DNA of 63,919 nt, the filler included, from Sluysia triapertura (lineage: Eukaryota), in the NCBI GenBank assembly GCA_046118255.1. It is 5 parts of 5 records of this genome, joined end to end, with 100 filler letters (N's around TTAATTAATTAA, not from the genome) between each part and the next. Parts side by side here need not be neighbours in the genome. Positions count along the whole stretch, not along the records: positions 16,715 to 27,708 come from JBJNIA010190430.1; 4 more parts are not named here. One strand, 5' to 3'. This document shows positions 16,715 to 27,808 of the stretch, one piece after another (the first letter of the stretch is position 1; every line of letters begins with the position of its first letter). Made by a program: the position numbers and the translations under genes. The notes under the pieces were generated by a model. The model was not told where the DNA came from. It searched no databases and worked only from the letters and a program-made list of their open reading frames with translations.

Positions 16715-18271
16715 TAAAATTTTCATATTTAGAATGATGAAGAGATGATGAGTTGGGTATGGATTGATTGCTATGAAATAGGATAATCCAAAAATGAGGT
16801 TGAAATGTTTGTGAAATGGTTCGTTTGGGAATGAGAACCTAAACATTTTCCATTACAAAATTGAGTGTAAGGAATTAAAAATTAATTAAAATGTAAAAAC
16901 TAAAGTTAAATTCATTATTTGTAAATATGTTAATAATACTAATGATTGTTATTTTAATGTAAGAAGTGATTCATGAAAACGTAGATCGAGTAGAGTAGAA
17001 AAAAAATGAGAGTTGATTGTTAATCGAATTGTTTTGTTTTTCTTGACAGGTCGTACCATGTAAGTTTCAAAGTCATTTTACTCGGTTTAATCTTTAAAAG
17101 AGGTTTTGATGATTTGTGTAAGAGTAATTCCTGATTGCGAATGTCGAAATGATTGGATGACAAAAAGGTATAAATTTGAACACTTAGGCATTTTTATTCA
17201 TATGTAAAAATGTAACTAACACGAAGATCCATGCTTTGGTAACATTTTACTTTAATTTTTCTTTAAATAAATAAATATTGATTTCAATTAGAATATTTTA
17301 TTGATCTATTTAAAATAAATTTTTAAATATTGAATAGTTTGCTATGATAGTTAAATTTTGTAGATACTGGAATATTTTATCATAGAGACTTAAGGTTTAT
17401 TATTGATCTACTCAATATAAAATTTTATTTTAAATAAATATTAAGGTATATTTTGTCCCAACATTTTCTAATTTTTGGTAAAACTAAAGTATATTTTTGG
17501 GGATTCACTATCTCATATTTCGTAGTCAATTTTGCTATTTTAGGGTGATCTCCTGTTGATTTTAATTTAAATGAGTGATACCTTTTTTTAAAGTGAGTTT
17601 ATATTATGTTAAATTGATATTTTTAGAGTTTATTCCTGTAATATAATTAGACTAAAATTGATATTTATTATTGTGATAGATTTTCATTTGTTTTAGCAGT
17701 CGTTAACAATTTCGTTATTCAGACAATTGTTATTTGTAGATTACTTAAAATATATTAAAGTGTTTTTGTTTTTTGACTTTATTATCGACCTAATAAGAAT
17801 AATATTATTGATTATCGACTTTATTGGACCATTAGAAAAGATTTATCGTTGTAATAAAATATTGTTGAAAATTTATATTATTAATTTTATACTTGCTAAT
17901 AATAATTCTTTCAGTATTTTTAATATAATATCCCAACAAATATTAATAATATAATTAAATTAAAATTGCATAAACTTTATAATCTTTCTCTGTACCTTTC
18001 TCTAAAAGTACATAAGTTAACAATTATTTTAAGTTAACAATAAATAAGTAGTGTTCGGTTGTAATTTATTAGTAACAACTAAAAAATAATTTAAAAAAAT
18101 TTCGTTTTAATAATTGTTATTATGACTACACCTTAAACAAAAAAAACTAATATATTTAAAAAATTATGCTTGTTATTTTAGATACAGGTTAATAATATAA
18201 GCTATGATTATTTGTAATATATTTTCAGTTTTTAATTTTTTTGAAAATTAAATTTAATACTTTTTGTGAAA

Positions 18272-18841
18272 ATGTCTATTGAAAAACAAAAAAATGAATT
18301 AAACAAAAAGTATATTGAAGCATTCAAAATTGATGATATAATACAAGTTAGGAACTTTTCATTATGTGATTATTTTTAGGACATGATGACAAATTTATTA
18401 CGAGATAAACCTGAAAAGCCACTTCTTTATATACACAAATTAATACAAAATCGAATTTCGAAATCTGGTTCCAATATTCCTCAAAATGTAAACATACAGG
18501 TTATCAACAATAATAATGTATTGATCCTTGTAGGAAATTTCTAACAAAAACTTTGGAAATCAAACTAATGAGGTGAATAAAGTAATAATATACGAATAAA
18601 TGCTTTTAGATTGCTAATGAATTAATTTCACTAAATGATATTAGTCAAGAATTTCAATTGGTAAGTGAACCAGAGCCCGATGAAATTGAAATACTACCGG
18701 AAAAATCTGGAAAGGACGAACTTTTGATGTTGCTTCAAAATCAAAAAACAAGCAAAGAAAATAATTTGAAATATTTAAACGAAATTGTGAATAATAAAGA
18801 AAATATTGGCGTAATTGAAGATCAAGCATTAATTATGGAAG
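18272..18841 (+). CDS. RIIa/Dpy-30-like dimerisation/docking-domain protein, C8orf34-like, 3'-partial; exons 18272-18346, 18380-18487 (or -18499), 18534-18572, 18610-18841
   Basis: GT-AG introns of 33, 46 (or 34) and 37 nt give a continuous frame. The N-terminus KYIEAFKIDDIIQDMMTNLLRDKPEKPLLYI fits the D/D consensus YLxxxxIxxLxxxLxxxLLxxxPxxPxxFL. VIEDQALIMEG resembles LLEDLNDLRMEG of C8orf34. Confidence 0.72.
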
Positions 18842-20676
18842 GTAAATGACAAATTATATTTTTTTATAACTAATATGTATTACAATTTGTTTTGACATAC
18901 ACATGTAAGCAAGCTGTAATAAATTTAACAACTATCTATTACTAAAAATTTAGTTTCATGAAAATTCTACGAACAATCCATTTATATCTTTTGTTAAATT
19001 TTGAACAGTGTATTGTTGAGTTAACTAAAATGATATTCATTACTAATATTGCGGAGTAAGGGAACTTATCCATAGTTTTAGATGTTACTTGTTTGCAGTT
19101 GGGAAGCATTTTTCTTTTCACTTACATAAAACTAATAAAGGGGAAAAATGCTTTTCTAACCTTTTTTCGCTGATTTTTGAAACTCCATTCTATCTCTTAA
19201 ACTGTTAAAATAGACTGGTAATTTTTGATACTAGTCTGCATATTATTAATAAAATTTTCACATTTTACGAGAGATGTTGGAAATTCTTTTATTTAAACGC
19301 GGTGAACATTTTTATGTATATCTCAAAGTATATATTTAATGTGATTATAGGGAACCACATATTTTCACGTCAAAATTGCACACTTCATCATATATGAACA
19401 TTTCTTACATAAACAACACTAAATAAACTAATTGACTCATTCAAAAAACAAGCCTAGTCATTGTACATAATTAACATTAGTTGTATTTATTGTTATCATA
19501 ACATCTATCATAATTGTAATATATGATTATTTATTTAGATTTTAACCTGCGTGAATTCCTTACGATATTAGACGTACTCACTTAAGGGCTAATACGTAAA
19601 TGACATTAAATAATTATTTGGAGGTTTTTTATATTTTAAAGTGTCAACAGACTAGTTTCTGTCATATTGCAATGACAGGTTAGAATTATGTATTTTACGT
19701 CGGATCCCAATTAAAAAGGATCTTCGAAAATGAAATTTAATATTAAACTATCAAAGGATTTTTGGGACAGTTTATAACTATGTAAGTTTAATGCTACGAA
19801 AATAATTTAATTATGAAAACGCAATATGAATAATTTATATTAGGATAAAAATTATAGCAAGTTTACAAATCTTTGTTGTATATTAAATATATAAAGATTA
19901 CAAAAAGTTAAATACCAGTGGTAATTAATTTTTCTTATAAATGTTTTGAAATTAACTTTGTTTCAACAAATTAACTAAAAAGATTTTGATAAAATTCAAC
20001 ATTTTTTAAAGTTACTATGAACTATTAATCAGGAGTATGATTAAAAAGTATGACTAAAATTTAACATTTTTCAAAGTTATTATGGAACTATTAATCAAAA
20101 GTGTATAAATACAAACACACAAAAAATTGTTGTAAAATGTTGGAAAATAACTACTTTCTCAAAAAATTCTGGTGAAAGTAAAATAATAGATGAAAGTACT
20201 GAAATCCAAAACATTTCATTCATGTAGAATGACAACACAATTTACTATTACTATTATAACAATTAATATTACTAATATTGCAATTAGTGCTACCGCTGAA
20301 ACTCGTTTATGGTTTGTTTTATTATCTGACATGTACTAATTGGTGGTTGGTTTAATAGTACTGTATGTTCCAAAGATATACATAATGTTTCCTAATACTT
20401 CTCAGAGACAGTTGGGTTTTCGAAATTATAACATTCAATTGATACTTCATAAATGGCATGATTTATTTTGGAATGTTAACTTCGACTTGGATTCAAGTTC
20501 GAATTTCCGTATTAAGAGTCATTTCTATCAAATCTAAACAACCATTACATAAAACTAAAACGTAATATTATTTCATTCCATTGATTAAATAATATAAGTC
20601 ATACAATACAATTCAATTTTATTTCTCTGAAGTGCAAATAAAATCGCTATGGATTATTTGACTACACCAAATTACA

Positions 20677-20901
20677 ATGAAACATTACCAAAGAATTTTA
20701 TCGGGTTTTTGTAATTCTACAATTATGTCTTCAGATACGTGGGAAACCATAAAATTATTGAATCGTTTTTGGCGTTATTTTGCATCCTGGTTTATACCTT
20801 TATTGTTAATATTTGGTGAAATTGGTACATTATTATGTTTAATTGTATTACTTCGTCGAAGAACCACTATCACCGATACTGTCATTGTTTCTAGCATCTG
20901 A
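20677..20901 (+). pseudogene. Rhodopsin-class GPCR N-terminus and TM1 fragment
   Basis: FWRYFASWFIPLLLIFGEIGTLLCLIVLLRRR matches the TM1 pattern PxxxxxGxxGNxLxxxVLxR of invertebrate peptide receptors, with N replaced by T. It stops before TM2. Confidence 0.5.
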
Positions 20902-23409
20902 AAATATTTATTGTCAGCCAAAAGTTTTAAAAACATCGACACTTCTGTAACAAGTATCATAATGTTTATGAAAAAAGTTTTGGATAAAATTATCTTTCAT
21001 CAACCACGATCATCAATTGAACAATCTCGTTCTGATTATGCTAAAGGTAATTATGAGCTTTATGACAAAACGTCTCTTTCTGATGATGCTAGAGCTGAAC
21101 ACGAAGGCAAATCTAAGAAGTCAAGTTATGATGTTACTGAAATTTTCACTTGTGAAAAAAAACGATTTAGAAAATAAACCATAACCAAATCATGAAAGTA
21201 ACTTTACAAGTATGAACATAATTGTATATATTTTAAATTCTATTTTTCTTTTGGTTTTATTGTTTATCATTTAAATAAAAGAACCATTTACTATTTTATT
21301 AGTTATTTGTTTAATTTGTTTGAACGATTTTTTTTATGTATTATAAAATTAAATTGCTGTTTAAATTAAAAATTTTAAAATCTTTAATAAATTTAGAAAA
21401 TAAAATTTTATTAATGATTAAGCACAAATTTTCAGCTAAGTTGAAAACACAATTAATGACCTCACTAAAATTGCTAAAGTGATAAAGCATACTAACAATC
21501 ACAAGACAAAAGTAAGATTGTTTCATTTTTAGAAAAATCAATATTTTGAGTAATTGTATAAATTATTTATTTTATATAAACTGAGTCATAAAAGTTCGGT
21601 CAAAATTAAAGATATTTGGCATTTTAAGTATTTTTCATTTTATTTGTATCTATTATGTTAAATATTTTAATTTCAATGCAATATTGTTAAAATTTTATAT
21701 TAATTTTTAATTAGACAAAAAATTTAAAATAAAATAATTAATAAAAATGTATAAATTTATTTACCATTAGTAAAGTTATTATAATTACTATTATGATTAT
21801 TATTTATTATTATTATTATTTTGTTGATGTTTGTTTGTTTGAAAAGTAGTTTGTTTTATTTGGAAAGAATATTGACTTATTAAGTAATGACATTAATTTG
21901 GTTATTAGATTATTATTTGAAATTGATTTATTAATTAAGTTTATCAAACGATATTTAAGTTCTAATTCTATTATCAGTATTAATTTCAAATTTATATCTT
22001 TACTTTTAATATTAATATTGATAGATGATAAACGTTGGATGACAAAAAGGAAAGATAAAATAAAAGGTTAGAAGGGAATGGTAGTGTTCTAGAAATTTTA
22101 TTATTATAAAATTTTATTTATAAAATACAATTTTTTAAAGTTTATTTTGTGTTATGTTGATTGTTAAATATGTTTGGTAATATTGACAAATGTTTTAAAT
22201 AGAAGTAAGATGGTTTATTGGCTTATTTAACTTTGTTTATATTTTTAATGAAATTTGTTTAGTTATGTTTACTTCATTTGTGAACAAGATTCCAAGTCGG
22301 TATATTAAACTTCACGATTATAGTTAGGAATTATTGTGAATTCTTTTGACTCATCTCTCGCTTTGTCCAGAGATAGAATTGCTATATTTCTAGTATGGGT
22401 AAAAATCCTTTATTTCTTTATTACAAATATAATAAACTCTAAATTATATTATTCAAATAAAGAGTAGAAGAATGTTAAATGTATAACAGAGAATAAATGT
22501 CACATGTAAAAACTGTTGCATTATTTTAACTATTTTAATTAAAATTTTAGTATTATATAATGTATTTACCTGTGATCACAGGAGAATCCACACAAATAAA
22601 AGTATTATCAACAAGAATTGTCTTTCAAATAATCAATCAATTTCCTTGGTAATTAAATCAATGTATTATCAACCGAATTTCCATTTCAGTAAATCAATCA
22701 ATGTGTTCAAAAATTTTGTTATTGTGGTCTAAATCATTACATCTGATTTTATTACGAAATCAGTACATAATAAACGCGGAACTCATAACATAATTAACAA
22801 AATTCTCAGTTTAAATAACAATCTTTAAATATTTCAAGGCTTTTTTTAATTTATTTATCTCACAACCTTTACAATCAAGAAATCAACAATGTTATTGAAT
22901 AAAAGATTTTAAGTTTTAAATCATTTAACAATAACATTACACTAGACAAACTCACTCTCCAAAACATCCATAAACTCAAACAATATTAAAGTAATATTAC
23001 AACGTAAATCATAAATTCATTTCAGGTCCACACGTTTCTAGAACACCGAACAACATTTCACAGAAGGAAATTTATACTTTACATTACCCAATTAATTCAA
23101 CATATTAAACTTCTTGATCACATTCAACTCAAACAATTCATATCCCATATGCAAAAAACCAAATAATAAGTTAAATTCTGCAGAAGATTGTTTAATAAGA
23201 ATCAAAGAATAGATACAAAAAGCATACTTAAATTTCCAATGTAATACAAAAGATTCAATAAAATTATAAACAATCTTAATTCATAAAACACTTAGCAAAA
23301 TAAATTTCTTCATAGTTTCCGACGAGCACGACTTACCAAATCCATAACACTACATGAACTTCTGTCTAATTCCTGTAATATTTATGTAATGTCTTGTGGT
23401 TTAAACACA

Positions 23410-23752
23410 AATAACATAAAAAGCTAATGACGATCGAATGGTTTTAGTATATAATGTAAAAGGTCGAGTTGCGATATCAGTTGATGATATTATTGATACT
23501 TGTGGAACCATTTCTATGACAGCAAACAAACTAATTGAAGCTGATTCAAAAGAAGTGTTTGCTATTTTGAACGCATGGTATATTTTTAGGACCTGCAATA
23601 AACAGAGTAGAATCATCAAAGTTTAAAGCAGTAATTGTAACAAATACAATTGACCAAGATCAGAATATGTTCAATGTATTTATGTGAGTATGGTTTTCGA
23701 TGGATACATAATGGAGAATATGTTTCGTATTTATTTGCAAATCTTACTCTTA
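23410..23752 (+). pseudogene. PRPS1: Ribose-phosphate pyrophosphokinase 3'-end processed pseudogene
   Basis: [27 protein letters not shown], then a frameshift to [27 protein letters not shown], then RWIHNGEYVSYLF. This is collinear with the PRPS C-terminus ([24 protein letters not shown]...THGIFSGPAI...HNGESVSYLF). No introns; several indels. Confidence 0.9.
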
Positions 23753-24319
23753 AAATAGAATTCACAAGTATCGTACTATCAGTTTCATGTTTAATATAAG
23801 ATCATTTTTATTCTAAGGAAAAAACGTTTAGTGTGATTACGTTTCATGCAATATACTTTACAAATTGTTTAATTATAAAATTATAAAAATATTTTATCTT
23901 ACGAAAATATTTAATAATTTGAAATTTTATACAATAAACTCGGCTATTTTTATCAGTAATAGATTTGATGTAATCCATATATATATTAACAATATATATT
24001 TATGTAAGATATTTAGGATGATATTGCAATAATTAGTAATAGAAATAATAGTAATATATTATTCAGATGATCCAGATCTTTACTCAAATGAACTTAATGT
24101 AAGTAACAATCCCATTCAAAGTTTTAATTCGAATCCAACTGTGATTATTAAAACAAATCGAGATGTTGATAAAAATATGACTTTTAATATTTGTTTAAAC
24201 TGTTCAAAGTAATTTTATTTGTTTTTAACTAAAGGTATTTATAAATTATTAAATAAACAGTAAATTATTATTTAGTAAACAAAATGAATTTACGCCAAAT
24301 GACTTAAAATTTTTTGTAT

Positions 24320-25016
24320 CGAAAATGGAAAATATACGAAATAGCATTAATAGATCAAATATTAAATTAAAAATGCAAAAGAACAAACGAATTTGTATTA
24401 AAGAAAATTAATGAGAATGATTTAATGCACATTATGTCGGAAATGTCAAAAACAAGTTCTATTAACCCAATAGCAACCAAACTTATCAAAAATAATTCAA
24501 TTTGGATTAAATTTATTCCGATTTTATTGAAAATTATTAATAATTCATTATATAGTCTAAAATTTCCTTCAAGTGAAAAAGTATCCGTTATAGAACCTTA
24601 TATGAAACAAAGTGATCCATTGCTTTTAAATAATTATTATATACCCGTATCAAATATAACACTCTTATCAAAGTTGATAGAAAAAGTAGTTTTACAACAA
24701 TTATCAAAGTTCTTAGGCGAAAATCAACTTCTTACAATGTATCAATCAGCCTACATGTCTGGTGCTTTTGATACAGTTGATCATGAAATATTACTTTGTG
24801 ATCTCCAAAAAATGTCTCATATGAATCATATTTAAATGAAAGAAGGCAATATGTTTTATTAAATAATGTGAAGTCAAATGAGGTATATGTAAAGCATGGA
24901 GTTCCTCAGGAATCAATACTTGGTACGTTATTGTTTATATTATATATCAATGATGTTTCAAGTGTAATCGAATCATACGGTTTTATATATGATGACATGC
25001 AAATATATTGTGAATA
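24320..25016 (+). mobile_element. Non-LTR retrotransposon (L2/CR1-type) reverse transcriptase relic
   Basis: PVSNITLLSKLIEKVV, YQSAY, AFDTVDHEILL, RRQYV, HGVPQESILGTLLFILYIND and YDDMQIY occur in RT order with deletions and frameshifts. Confidence 0.92.
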
Positions 25017-25340
25017 ATGTGTGTATAAATAATGTTTCAAAATTATTTGTGTATAAATAATAATGTATGTATCAAAAATTATTTATAACTGATTTATAAA
25101 CTTATAATGTTTGTATCAAAATTATATATAACTGTTATTGATTTATAAACTTTTTATGAATAATTATTACTGATTTTTTAATACTTGATATTTATTTGAA
25201 ATTTATTTTGGATATTTTAATTGAATTTTTTAATATTGGAACGTAAGTAATTATAAATTTTTAAAAGTTAATTTTAGTATATTAAGTTAATTTTTGAAAA
25301 TAAAAGTTAATTTTAATTGTTTTAATATATTAAGTTAAAA

Positions 25341-26216
25341 TAATTTGTTTTAGTCTGGCTAAGGTCAGACTAAAACAATTATAAATAGTCATAGAATTTG
25401 CTAGACAGTACCACAATTTGGTAATTCAATTTTATAACCACAATTGTTTTAACAGTGTTTTGAGACAAAATTTGTTTTGAATTTGAACGTAACTTTAGCA
25501 AAACTTTTGAAACCATTTGCTGGATACTGTTTATCGAAGTTTAAAAAATAATTACGTTAGTTTGTTTATGTTAAGGTAGGATATAAGTAAATATATCCAC
25601 GCAAAATATACTAAAAATCATTTTTGATTAATTTTTCTTTAACAGATCTTATAATAGATCTGACGTAAAATCTCCATTAAAATATTATTGACTCAGGAAT
25701 TAATTTCATTTAATTCCTCGTAAACTACCATATATTTTATTATATTTAAATTCCTTTATTATTTTTTGTATTTAATAAAATTTTAAAAATCGTTCATTAT
25801 TCTTTAAAATTTCATAGTTTTAAATATAAAATCTATAGTAGAATAACGTTTTCAACAATTAGAATTTAAATCTAATCTCTAAAAATTATTTTTATAGATC
25901 ATTTTCATAGGATCATCGTAAAATATTTCATAAATTATTTCTCTTTATAGTTGAATAATAATAATTTCTTTAATTATTCAGAAAAACTTAATATTAAAGA
26001 TAACCTATACTGAAATCTGAAATTAACAATAAGCCAAGAATACCTGTACACTCTTTTATATATCTCCAGATTTAGATTAGATTTGAAAGACTAACACACA
26101 GACCTTGATCTTAGGGCATTTAGATACGTTCTTAGTGAAAATCCTTTCCATTATAGAAAATACCAACGGTCAGCCCTAACTAGTAAGCCTAATACGTTGG
26201 TGAATTTACGTTAAAA
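25341..26216 (+). repeat. Structured TATA-bearing non-coding repeat, copy A (LTR-like)
   Basis: Collinear conserved blocks with copy B (44971-45811, +) and copy C (35109-36080, -); see findings. Confidence 0.85.
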
Positions 26217-27627
26217 CCTTTTTTTTCTATTTTATCTTTTAAAATTCTCACAATATATTTAGAGTATGTGTTTTTTATTTAAGTTGGCGCTTGACTGTAT
26301 CGTCCTGGAAGTGCGATATTATGAAATATATCCGTACCGAACTGTTAATGTAAGTTTTAATAAAAAACTTATGATTCTATTCTACAACTCTTCATGCAAA
26401 CATTTTAAAACACACAATTTAATATGTTCACACTATAAACGTACTAGACTTCTCACTTTTCTTATATATCTACAGTACCGTTTAATACAGCTGATATCAA
26501 GATGCACTTAGACTAATAGCATCTTTTAAATTGCTTAATTATTTACACAATCTTAAATTTTGAAAAATCTCAAAAACTTAAATGTACCTTCAGTAAGTGC
26601 ATTAAGATATAATCTCAAAAAGTCCTACAATTAAATCAGCTAATTTGAATATGAAAAAATTGTTAGTCAAATGCTAGTCAAACCTCATCAATAATTTCAT
26701 TAACATTGTCACCTGTGATTTCTCTTTATTTTAATGTTTTAGATATATATTGGGACCATGATTTAGAGAAATGTAATATTTGTGTCTGTTTCATGTCTTT
26801 ATTAATTAATTCCAATAGCGATAACAGGTACACTTTAAATTCATTTGATCGTTATTTATTAACCACTACTGATGATATGACTATGATGAATTTGGTGAGT
26901 TTACTGAATTGAGACTGCTGTAAATGTTGTTTTTTGCTCTCCGTAATTACCATTATGCGGTCAATTCGAATTTGTTTTATTAAGATGAATTAGAAATTAC
27001 AGGTAGTATTGCTCGAATCAATAATTTTAGCAAAAAACAGCCTTGTTTGCATTCATAAAGTACAATTACGAAATATTTGTCTGTTTAAACAAATTAACCT
27101 CTGTTTATGACGAATTCGGCTATGGTTTCCTTATTGATTGCTGTAAGTATTCGATTGAAAAGAAAAATGAGAGTGAATTTGTTGATTTTAACAAGAAATT
27201 AATCATGGACTTTTTAATTTAATGCCAGTAATAAATTATTTAAAGTTTTGTATCACCACTATATCGAAGACACGTTTACAGTTATAACATCATTTCTAAC
27301 CATTCCTAATAATGATGTTTTACTCCTCAGTTTTGCAAACCACATAAACTACATGATTTCATGTTCACTAAAATTTACTCGCTTTAATTTTTATTTAAGT
27401 TCATTCAAAATTCTAAAATCAACTTCTCTATATTATACAACCACATCGACCATATTGTCTTATCAATTAATTTTCTCTATGTCTGGGAAACCTTTTCTGG
27501 CAATGTATTCTTTAATAAATTTACTTTCACAAGAAAATCATATAACTGGAATAAACTGAAAATAATAATTAAAATTATACAAAGAAAAATGCCGACAAAT
27601 CAAAATGTTATAATCACAATCAATATT

Positions 27628-27628
27628 A

Positions 27629-27694
<66 letters not shown>

Positions 27695-27808
27695 CTTTAT
27701 TATTATGTNNNNNNNNNNNNNNNNNNNNNNNNNNNNNNNNNNNNNNNNNNNNTTAATTAATTAANNNNNNNNNNNNNNNNNNNNNNNNNNNNNNNNNNNN
27801 NNNNNNNN

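Follow-up and report, generated by a model that had tools for sequence, protein, structure and literature searches.

What is the ~0.9-kb non-coding unit at 25341-26216 of the Sluysia triapertura window (63,919 nucleotides, filler included): a gene for a structured RNA or a piece of mobile element? From the sequence alone, this unit (copy A) had been described as one of three dispersed copies, A, B and C, of a family that keeps a TATA box, ordered hairpins and splice motifs, and it had been proposed to encode a Pol II-transcribed, structured and probably spliced RNA, with an intron-containing LTR or retroelement leader as an alternative. We took the three-copy family, including copies B and C, from this sequence-only reading and analysed copy A alone, within the piece of the window that holds it (positions 16715-27708, ~11 kb); all counts per piece refer to this stretch, whose G+C content is ~23% throughout and whose sequence appears eukaryotic and non-human. 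Our preferred reading, tentative and given somewhat less than an even chance, assigns copy A to a ~1.24-kb mobile-element insertion (25009-26252), a solo LTR or similar with a structured leader. That the family consists of transcribed units (ncRNA genes or an unrecognised retroelement leader), with hairpins under RNA-structure selection and a real intron inside the repeat, is highly doubtful.

Every motif listed for copy A was found, and its coordinates were checked (Table 1). The stem-loop ahead of the TATA box is perfect as claimed, although its stem measures 13 bp rather than 12; this hairpin folds at -21.3 kcal/mol (z -8.3) and contains the longest perfect stem in the piece (P=0.004 for a 13-bp stem). 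Three more perfect hairpins follow, one of which (25643-25662) carries a self-complementary AGATCT in each arm. The z-scores of the four perfect hairpins, -3.7 to -8.3, come from windows picked after the hairpins were seen. Past the donor-like site, two of the perfect hairpins are separated by a U-rich stretch, CAUUUUUGA at 25620-25628.

Table 1. Features in and around copy A; positions count along the whole window.
Feature	Position	Strand	Remark
Small four-exon gene	exons 18272-18346, 18380-18499, 18534-18572, 18610-18849	+	all phase 0
PRPP-synthetase (Pribosyl_synth) pseudogene fragment	~23400-23760	+	frameshift near 23570
Degraded non-LTR (LINE) reverse-transcriptase fragment	24307-25014	+	frameshift near 24810-24830; Pfam RVT_1, weak
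ATATAT, candidate 6-bp target-site duplication, left copy	25003-25008		direct reading and TG..CA/TIR/TSD scan
Candidate non-coding LTR-like insertion, 1,244 bp	25009-26252	+	starts TGTGA, ends TCACA; holds all of copy A
AT-rich tandem repeats, periods 15, 43, 19 and ~48 nt	25013-25340	+	upstream of hairpin and TATA box
Perfect 13-bp palindromic hairpin, TTGTTTTAGTCTG / CAGACTAAAACAA, 8-nt loop	25345-25378		1 nt short of TATA box
TATA box, TATAAATAGTCATA	25380-25393	+	then CAGT at 25406-25409; core-promoter-like layout 25380-25409
Donor-like ACGTTAGT	25554-25561	+	exact 8-mer unique in piece
Perfect 7-bp hairpin, GGATATA / TATATCC, 6-nt loop	25579-25598		z -3.7
Perfect 7-bp hairpin, CAGATCT / AGATCTG, loop TATAAT	25643-25662		z -3.9
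Perfect 9-bp hairpin, AGGAATTAA / TTAATTCCT, 6-nt loop	25695-25718		z -4.2
ATTAGA / TCTAAT stem, 6 bp	25858-25876		z -2.1; 11/200 shuffles as good; within chance
AGGATC	25909		motif of the sequence-only reading, present
'Terminal hairpin' ACCAACG...CGTTGGT, 7 bp, 26-nt loop	26162-26201		z -0.7; 41/200 shuffles as good; within chance
ATATAT, candidate 6-bp target-site duplication, right copy	26253-26258		direct reading and TG..CA/TIR/TSD scan
Formerly coding-looking region	26253-27620	+	open segments of 113, 82, 81 and 77 codons in different frames

Across 25341-25740 there are four perfect stems of at least 7 bp with loops of at most 8 nt, compared with 0.56 in dinucleotide shuffles (P=0.003), and perfect stems there account for 36 paired bases against 4.2 in the shuffles. 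Four perfect stems were also reached in 3% of the other 400-nt windows of the piece, with at most 33 paired bases. Copy A as a whole contains 21 stems of at least 6 bp (12.1 +/- 3.4 in dinucleotide shuffles), and 6 stems with at least two G/C pairs where 1.3 were expected. RNA folding of 49 windows of 220 nt gave a background z of -0.3 +/- 1.4, and on the + strand the z-score dropped furthest at 25301-25520 (-6.3) and next at 25521-25740 (-3.6). A 181-nt domain (25545-25725) had z -4.3, with none of 200 shuffles folding as well. Relative to shuffles, 25301-25520 folds better as the + strand than as the - strand (-2.8), a mild hint that the + strand RNA of this segment matters, which speaks against an origin of the structure purely at the DNA level. 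The second half of copy A (25741-26216) had ordinary fold z values (-0.5 and 0.0). Of the unit described as structured, only the first ~400 nt bear out that description, and the confinement of excess structure to 25301-25740 speaks for the LTR reading.

The four stems pair by Watson-Crick rules in all 36 positions, with no G-U pairs and no mismatches, and are thus DNA palindromes. Template switching perfects quasi-palindromes and changes both arms together without selection on RNA, and so would mimic the reported pattern in which stems persist while loops vary; the stems may have been kept perfect by this kind of quasi-palindrome correction rather than by RNA selection. Copy A could also have no function and be an old AT-rich repeat or junk sequence whose short palindromes came about, and became perfect, through template switching in replication, the ordered 'blocks' being what catches the eye. 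The other windows with four perfect stems fit such an account, and so does the lack of any excess over chance in half of the listed features, but no other part of the piece reaches the hairpin cluster in paired bases or in G/C-containing stems, the cluster includes the 13-bp perfect stem, and we regard this explanation as improbable.

Promoter-like and splice-like motifs were weighed against their frequency in the piece. A CAGT initiator-like motif lies 26 nt downstream of the TATA box (25380). The two strands of the piece together hold 51 TATAAA sites, and two of these (25380 included) have CAGT 24-32 nt downstream, so that the layout at 25380 is at chance level; Pol II transcription from this TATA box is no more than possible. 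TATAAATA at 25380, CAGT at 25406 and AATAAA at 25774 all lie on the + strand inside the candidate insertion, and each is common by chance here; the promoter-like spacing of TATA box and CAGT nevertheless counts among the points for the LTR reading. The pattern GT[AT]AGT, to which the donor-like site belongs, occurs 15 times in the piece (10 on the + strand, 5 on the -). The claim that the RNA is spliced found no support: donor- and acceptor-like motifs are at background frequency, and the proposed intron would be ~340 nt long, whereas the only visible introns in the piece measure 33-37 nt. These are the GT..AG introns (33, 34 and 37 nt) of the small four-exon gene, and they say something about the host lineage. 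The ~157-residue product of this gene, whose exons were examined singly, matched no family in a Pfam search, and a Dpy-30/RIIa identity was dropped for lack of Pfam support. Perfect palindromes together with TATA-like and splice-like motifs in DNA of 23% GC easily mimic an RNA gene, and this calls for caution.

Comparison with described RNAs and with other genomes gave no relatives. Rfam, which the sequence-only reading had named as a check, returned no match to the piece at E<=1; for the block 25009-26252, the best E values were 8-10, with 15-18 bits against thresholds of 45-75, which is noise. Copy A therefore does not group with the described structured RNA families (snRNA, SL RNA, hammerhead, miRNA, snoRNA), which also counts for the LTR reading. 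A second copy of A inside the piece was not found, compositional matches aside. Pattern scans for copy A gave three chance matches without extended similarity in metagenome contigs, and none in viral contigs or prokaryote genome contigs; a literature search found no mention. Spliced-leader RNA genes offer a superficial resemblance, in that a donor-like site, a hairpin, a U-rich stretch (CAUUUUUGA) and another hairpin follow each other within ~110 nt (25554-25662). Unlike SL RNAs, in which the donor lies 20-50 nt from the start, copy A has its donor-like site ~150 nt from the putative start; it also has no Rfam SL match and is not in a tandem array.

These results bear on the idea that copy A is an independent multicopy gene, either for a Pol II-transcribed, structured and spliced ncRNA or as a small-RNA host gene, which would start ~27 nt after the TATA box and whose hairpins would be under RNA selection. 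The fold of 25301-25520, stronger on the + strand than on the -, the multi-hairpin 181-nt domain, the promoter-like TATA box/CAGT spacing and the lack of an ORF are all as such a gene would have them. However, Rfam yielded nothing but noise even at E<=10, the splice-like motifs do not exceed background in a piece whose known introns are 33-37 nt long, TATA boxes are everywhere (51 in 11 kb), and perfect DNA palindromes without G-U pairs fit a DNA-level or mutational origin. We place an independent RNA gene between improbable and highly doubtful.

The reading that we prefer rests on the block ends, the candidate flanking duplication and the left break point. A 13-bp inverted repeat, AAATATATTGTGA at 25001-25013 and TCACAATATATTT at 26248-26260, encloses copy A and resolves into a TGTGA/TCACA terminal inverted repeat and a candidate 6-bp ATATAT duplication. 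An LTR begins with TG and ends with CA, is bordered by a target duplication of 4-6 bp, and carries U3 repeats, a TATA box and a structured leader; TG...CA ends in the form of a short terminal inverted repeat were found here (TGTGA 25009-25013, TCACA 26248-26252). In a systematic TG..CA scan, 25009-26252 was the sole candidate around copy A with a terminal inverted repeat (TIR) of at least 5 bp and a target-site duplication (TSD) of at least 6 bp, a combination that never arose when the same geometry was shifted to 242 control placements elsewhere in the piece. Weaker TG..CA candidates (TIR>=4, TSD>=5) occurred in 14% of control placements, and the ATATAT flanks are low-complexity and self-complementary in DNA of 23% GC; both points weigh against the LTR reading. 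The left 330 nt of the block, outside copy A as it had been delimited, are filled by U3-like tandem repeats (25013-25340), which favours an LTR. No coding signal was found in 25009-26252 on either strand, unlike in the right flank, and this too supports the LTR reading; the reported lack of an ORF was borne out, as open segments in the block are, if anything, shorter than in shuffles.

Other classes of mobile element were compared with the same ends. A MITE or other TIR DNA transposon, which calls for a TIR of at least 10 bp and a superfamily-specific target duplication, was rejected: the 13-bp inverted repeat of the block consists mostly of palindromic flank, AATATATT, and the true terminal repeat is 4-5 bp. 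A Helitron, which needs a 5' TC, a 3' CTRR ~10 nt past a terminal hairpin and insertion at A/T, was likewise set aside, with no CTRR after either terminal hairpin on reading both strands. The limits given for copy A coincide exactly with a direct repeat of 7 bp, GTTAAAA (25333-25339 and 26210-26216), which contains the LINE endonuclease target TTAAAA. This repeat counts against the LTR reading, as does the extent of the reported similarity among copies, which leaves out the first 330 nt and the last 36 nt of the block. Copy A could instead be a mobile element of ~870 bp (25340-26209) with GTTAAAA as its duplication, either a retroposon of non-autonomous type or a small DNA element whose hairpins are subterminal; the coincidence with the reported limits of homology and the hairpin at the very start of the unit suit this proposal. 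Such a 7-bp repeat is expected ~0.3 times by chance in such windows, though, and the unit has no poly(A) or simple-repeat tail, no terminal inverted repeats of useful length and no Helitron ends on either strand, and the break in the LINE at 25008 would be left unexplained. We therefore consider a GTTAAAA-bounded element unlikely.

The LINE fragment provides the left break point. It stops at its YxDD box, at the left edge of the block, and its reverse transcriptase has 8,865 relatives among 1.84 billion representative proteins, the best at 47% identity. These relatives are endonuclease-plus-RT proteins of 940-980 residues on contigs that also carry ORF1; the nearest belong to complete LINEs (ORF1+ORF2), whose contigs, from metagenomes or MAGs, measure 3-4 kb and have 26-27% G+C. 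One relative sits in a MAG labelled Flavobacteriaceae (GCA_003506685.1), evidently by eukaryotic contamination of the bin. In tblastn with 33 full-length relatives, homology always ended within 24954-25014, and mostly at 25005-25014 (about residue 665 of 940), which supports an insertion beginning at 25009. Upstream on the same strand, the PRPP-synthetase pseudogene reads on to a C-terminal ..HNGEYVSYLF.. motif and is probably a processed pseudogene.

The right edge is less favourable, as a clean insertion predicts that LINE coding resumes at 26259 and none was detected. To the right of the block, a profile built from the C-terminal 280 residues of 22 relatives had no match, permissive tblastn gave no colinear matches, and Smith-Waterman scored real and shuffled segments alike. 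Profile alignment with frameshifts allowed reached 16.8 there, where control windows gave 17.4 +/- 3.0. LINE C-terminal motifs seemingly visible by eye in 26243-26609 and 27218-27556 were dropped, with tests at shuffle level. The right flank (26253-27620) did look formerly coding: its top four open segments sum to 353 codons, compared with 205 +/- 28 after shuffling (P<0.003), and Pfam, word search and PDB yielded no relatives.

This flank raises the prospect that copy A supplies the promoter and 5' untranslated flank to a (formerly) coding + strand unit at 26253-27620, and that the family represents an upstream region common to duplicated genes or belonging to another retroelement, such as a LINE 5' UTR with an internal promoter. 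The significantly long open segments lie directly downstream of copy A in the orientation of the TATA box, and LINE 5' UTRs of ~0.9 kb with promoters and repeats are generally known. But the segments are in different frames and have no relatives, they show no similarity to ORF1 of the related LINEs, and the reported similarity among copies is confined to ~0.9 kb, making a 5' flank decidedly unlikely. Assignment of the block to the LINE family next to it, as a 3' part or a 5' UTR, was rejected, with no colinear ORF2 C-terminus or ORF1 homology adjoining it.

The rest of the piece contributed smaller observations. Ten ORFs of the piece, looked up for exact identity in a protein collection, had no entry there. 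A + strand open frame at 20677-21177 (74 and 88 codons, split by one in-frame TGA) includes a hydrophobic stretch, has no Pfam match and is possibly a pseudogene. Microsatellites were seen at 21776-21820, (TTA)15, and at the contig edge at 27624-27706, (TAT)28. A tRNA search of the piece found none, a GPCR identity for an 'FDRYL' segment was dropped for want of Pfam support, and a bacterial promoter/terminator scan was set aside as irrelevant in eukaryote-like DNA.

On the preferred reading, the block would be the solo LTR of an uncharacterised LTR retrotransposon lying among decayed retro-sequences (the PRPP-synthetase pseudogene and the LINE RT fragment). From left to right it carries variable-looking tandem repeats, the 13-bp hairpin, the TATA box with CAGT, and a leader with the three further perfect hairpins. 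The tandem repeats, hairpin and TATA box would make up U3, transcription would start near 25407, and the hairpin-rich stretch that follows would be an R/U5 leader, whose structures would serve the element RNA of full-length copies, for instance in its packaging, dimerisation or stability. The three copies reported from both strands would then be nothing other than normal copies of the element, and a dispersed, diverged, strand-indifferent family of ~1-kb non-coding units, as the sequence-only reading described, is what such elements produce. Splicing has no part in this explanation. The LTR or retroelement-leader alternative offered earlier is thus favoured by the TG..CA ends, the candidate 6-bp flanking duplication and the LINE break point at the left end, without its intron.

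The block resembles an LTR of Gypsy, BEL-Pao or Copia type in its ~1.2-kb non-coding extent, TGT..ACA-type ends with a short inverted repeat, candidate 6-bp flanking duplication and tandem repeats upstream of a TATA box, and, going by the reported copies, in its dispersal in both orientations. Unlike a typical LTR retrotransposon, and counting against the reading, it is accompanied in the piece by neither a partner LTR nor a primer-binding site, a polypurine tract or gag-pol (no TGG-type primer-binding site follows 26252), the LINE target was not detected to its right, and the ~840 nt after the TATA box are unusually long for an LTR leader. Deltaretrovirus-type LTRs (HTLV/BLV) carry their major splice donor in an R region that is long and highly structured, and we liken to them the block's TATA box, long structured leader and donor-like site inside the repeat; in contrast to them, the host here is AT-rich with 33-37-nt introns, and no sequence or structural homology is expected. 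Penelope-like elements, with their pseudo-LTRs, are retroelements that retain introns and carry hammerhead ribozymes, and likewise recall the block as non-coding terminal repeats able to hold an intron and structured RNA motifs. Here, however, there was no hammerhead or other Rfam match, and a Penelope RT and GIY-YIG domain were not seen in the piece.

If copy A is part of an LTR or another mobile-element fragment, the finding amounts to routine repeat annotation for an unannotated AT-rich genome, and its main value would be as a warning that AT-rich palindromes and motifs imitate RNA genes. Should diverged copies really show covariation in the hairpins, and the unit prove to be both transcribed and spliced, it would merit description as an unusual case of a structured retroelement leader or an ncRNA family. 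Were the intron-in-repeat reading true, the unit would be an LTR or leader that is dense in structure and bears an intron, a kind so far undescribed in this AT-rich lineage, whose introns are very short.
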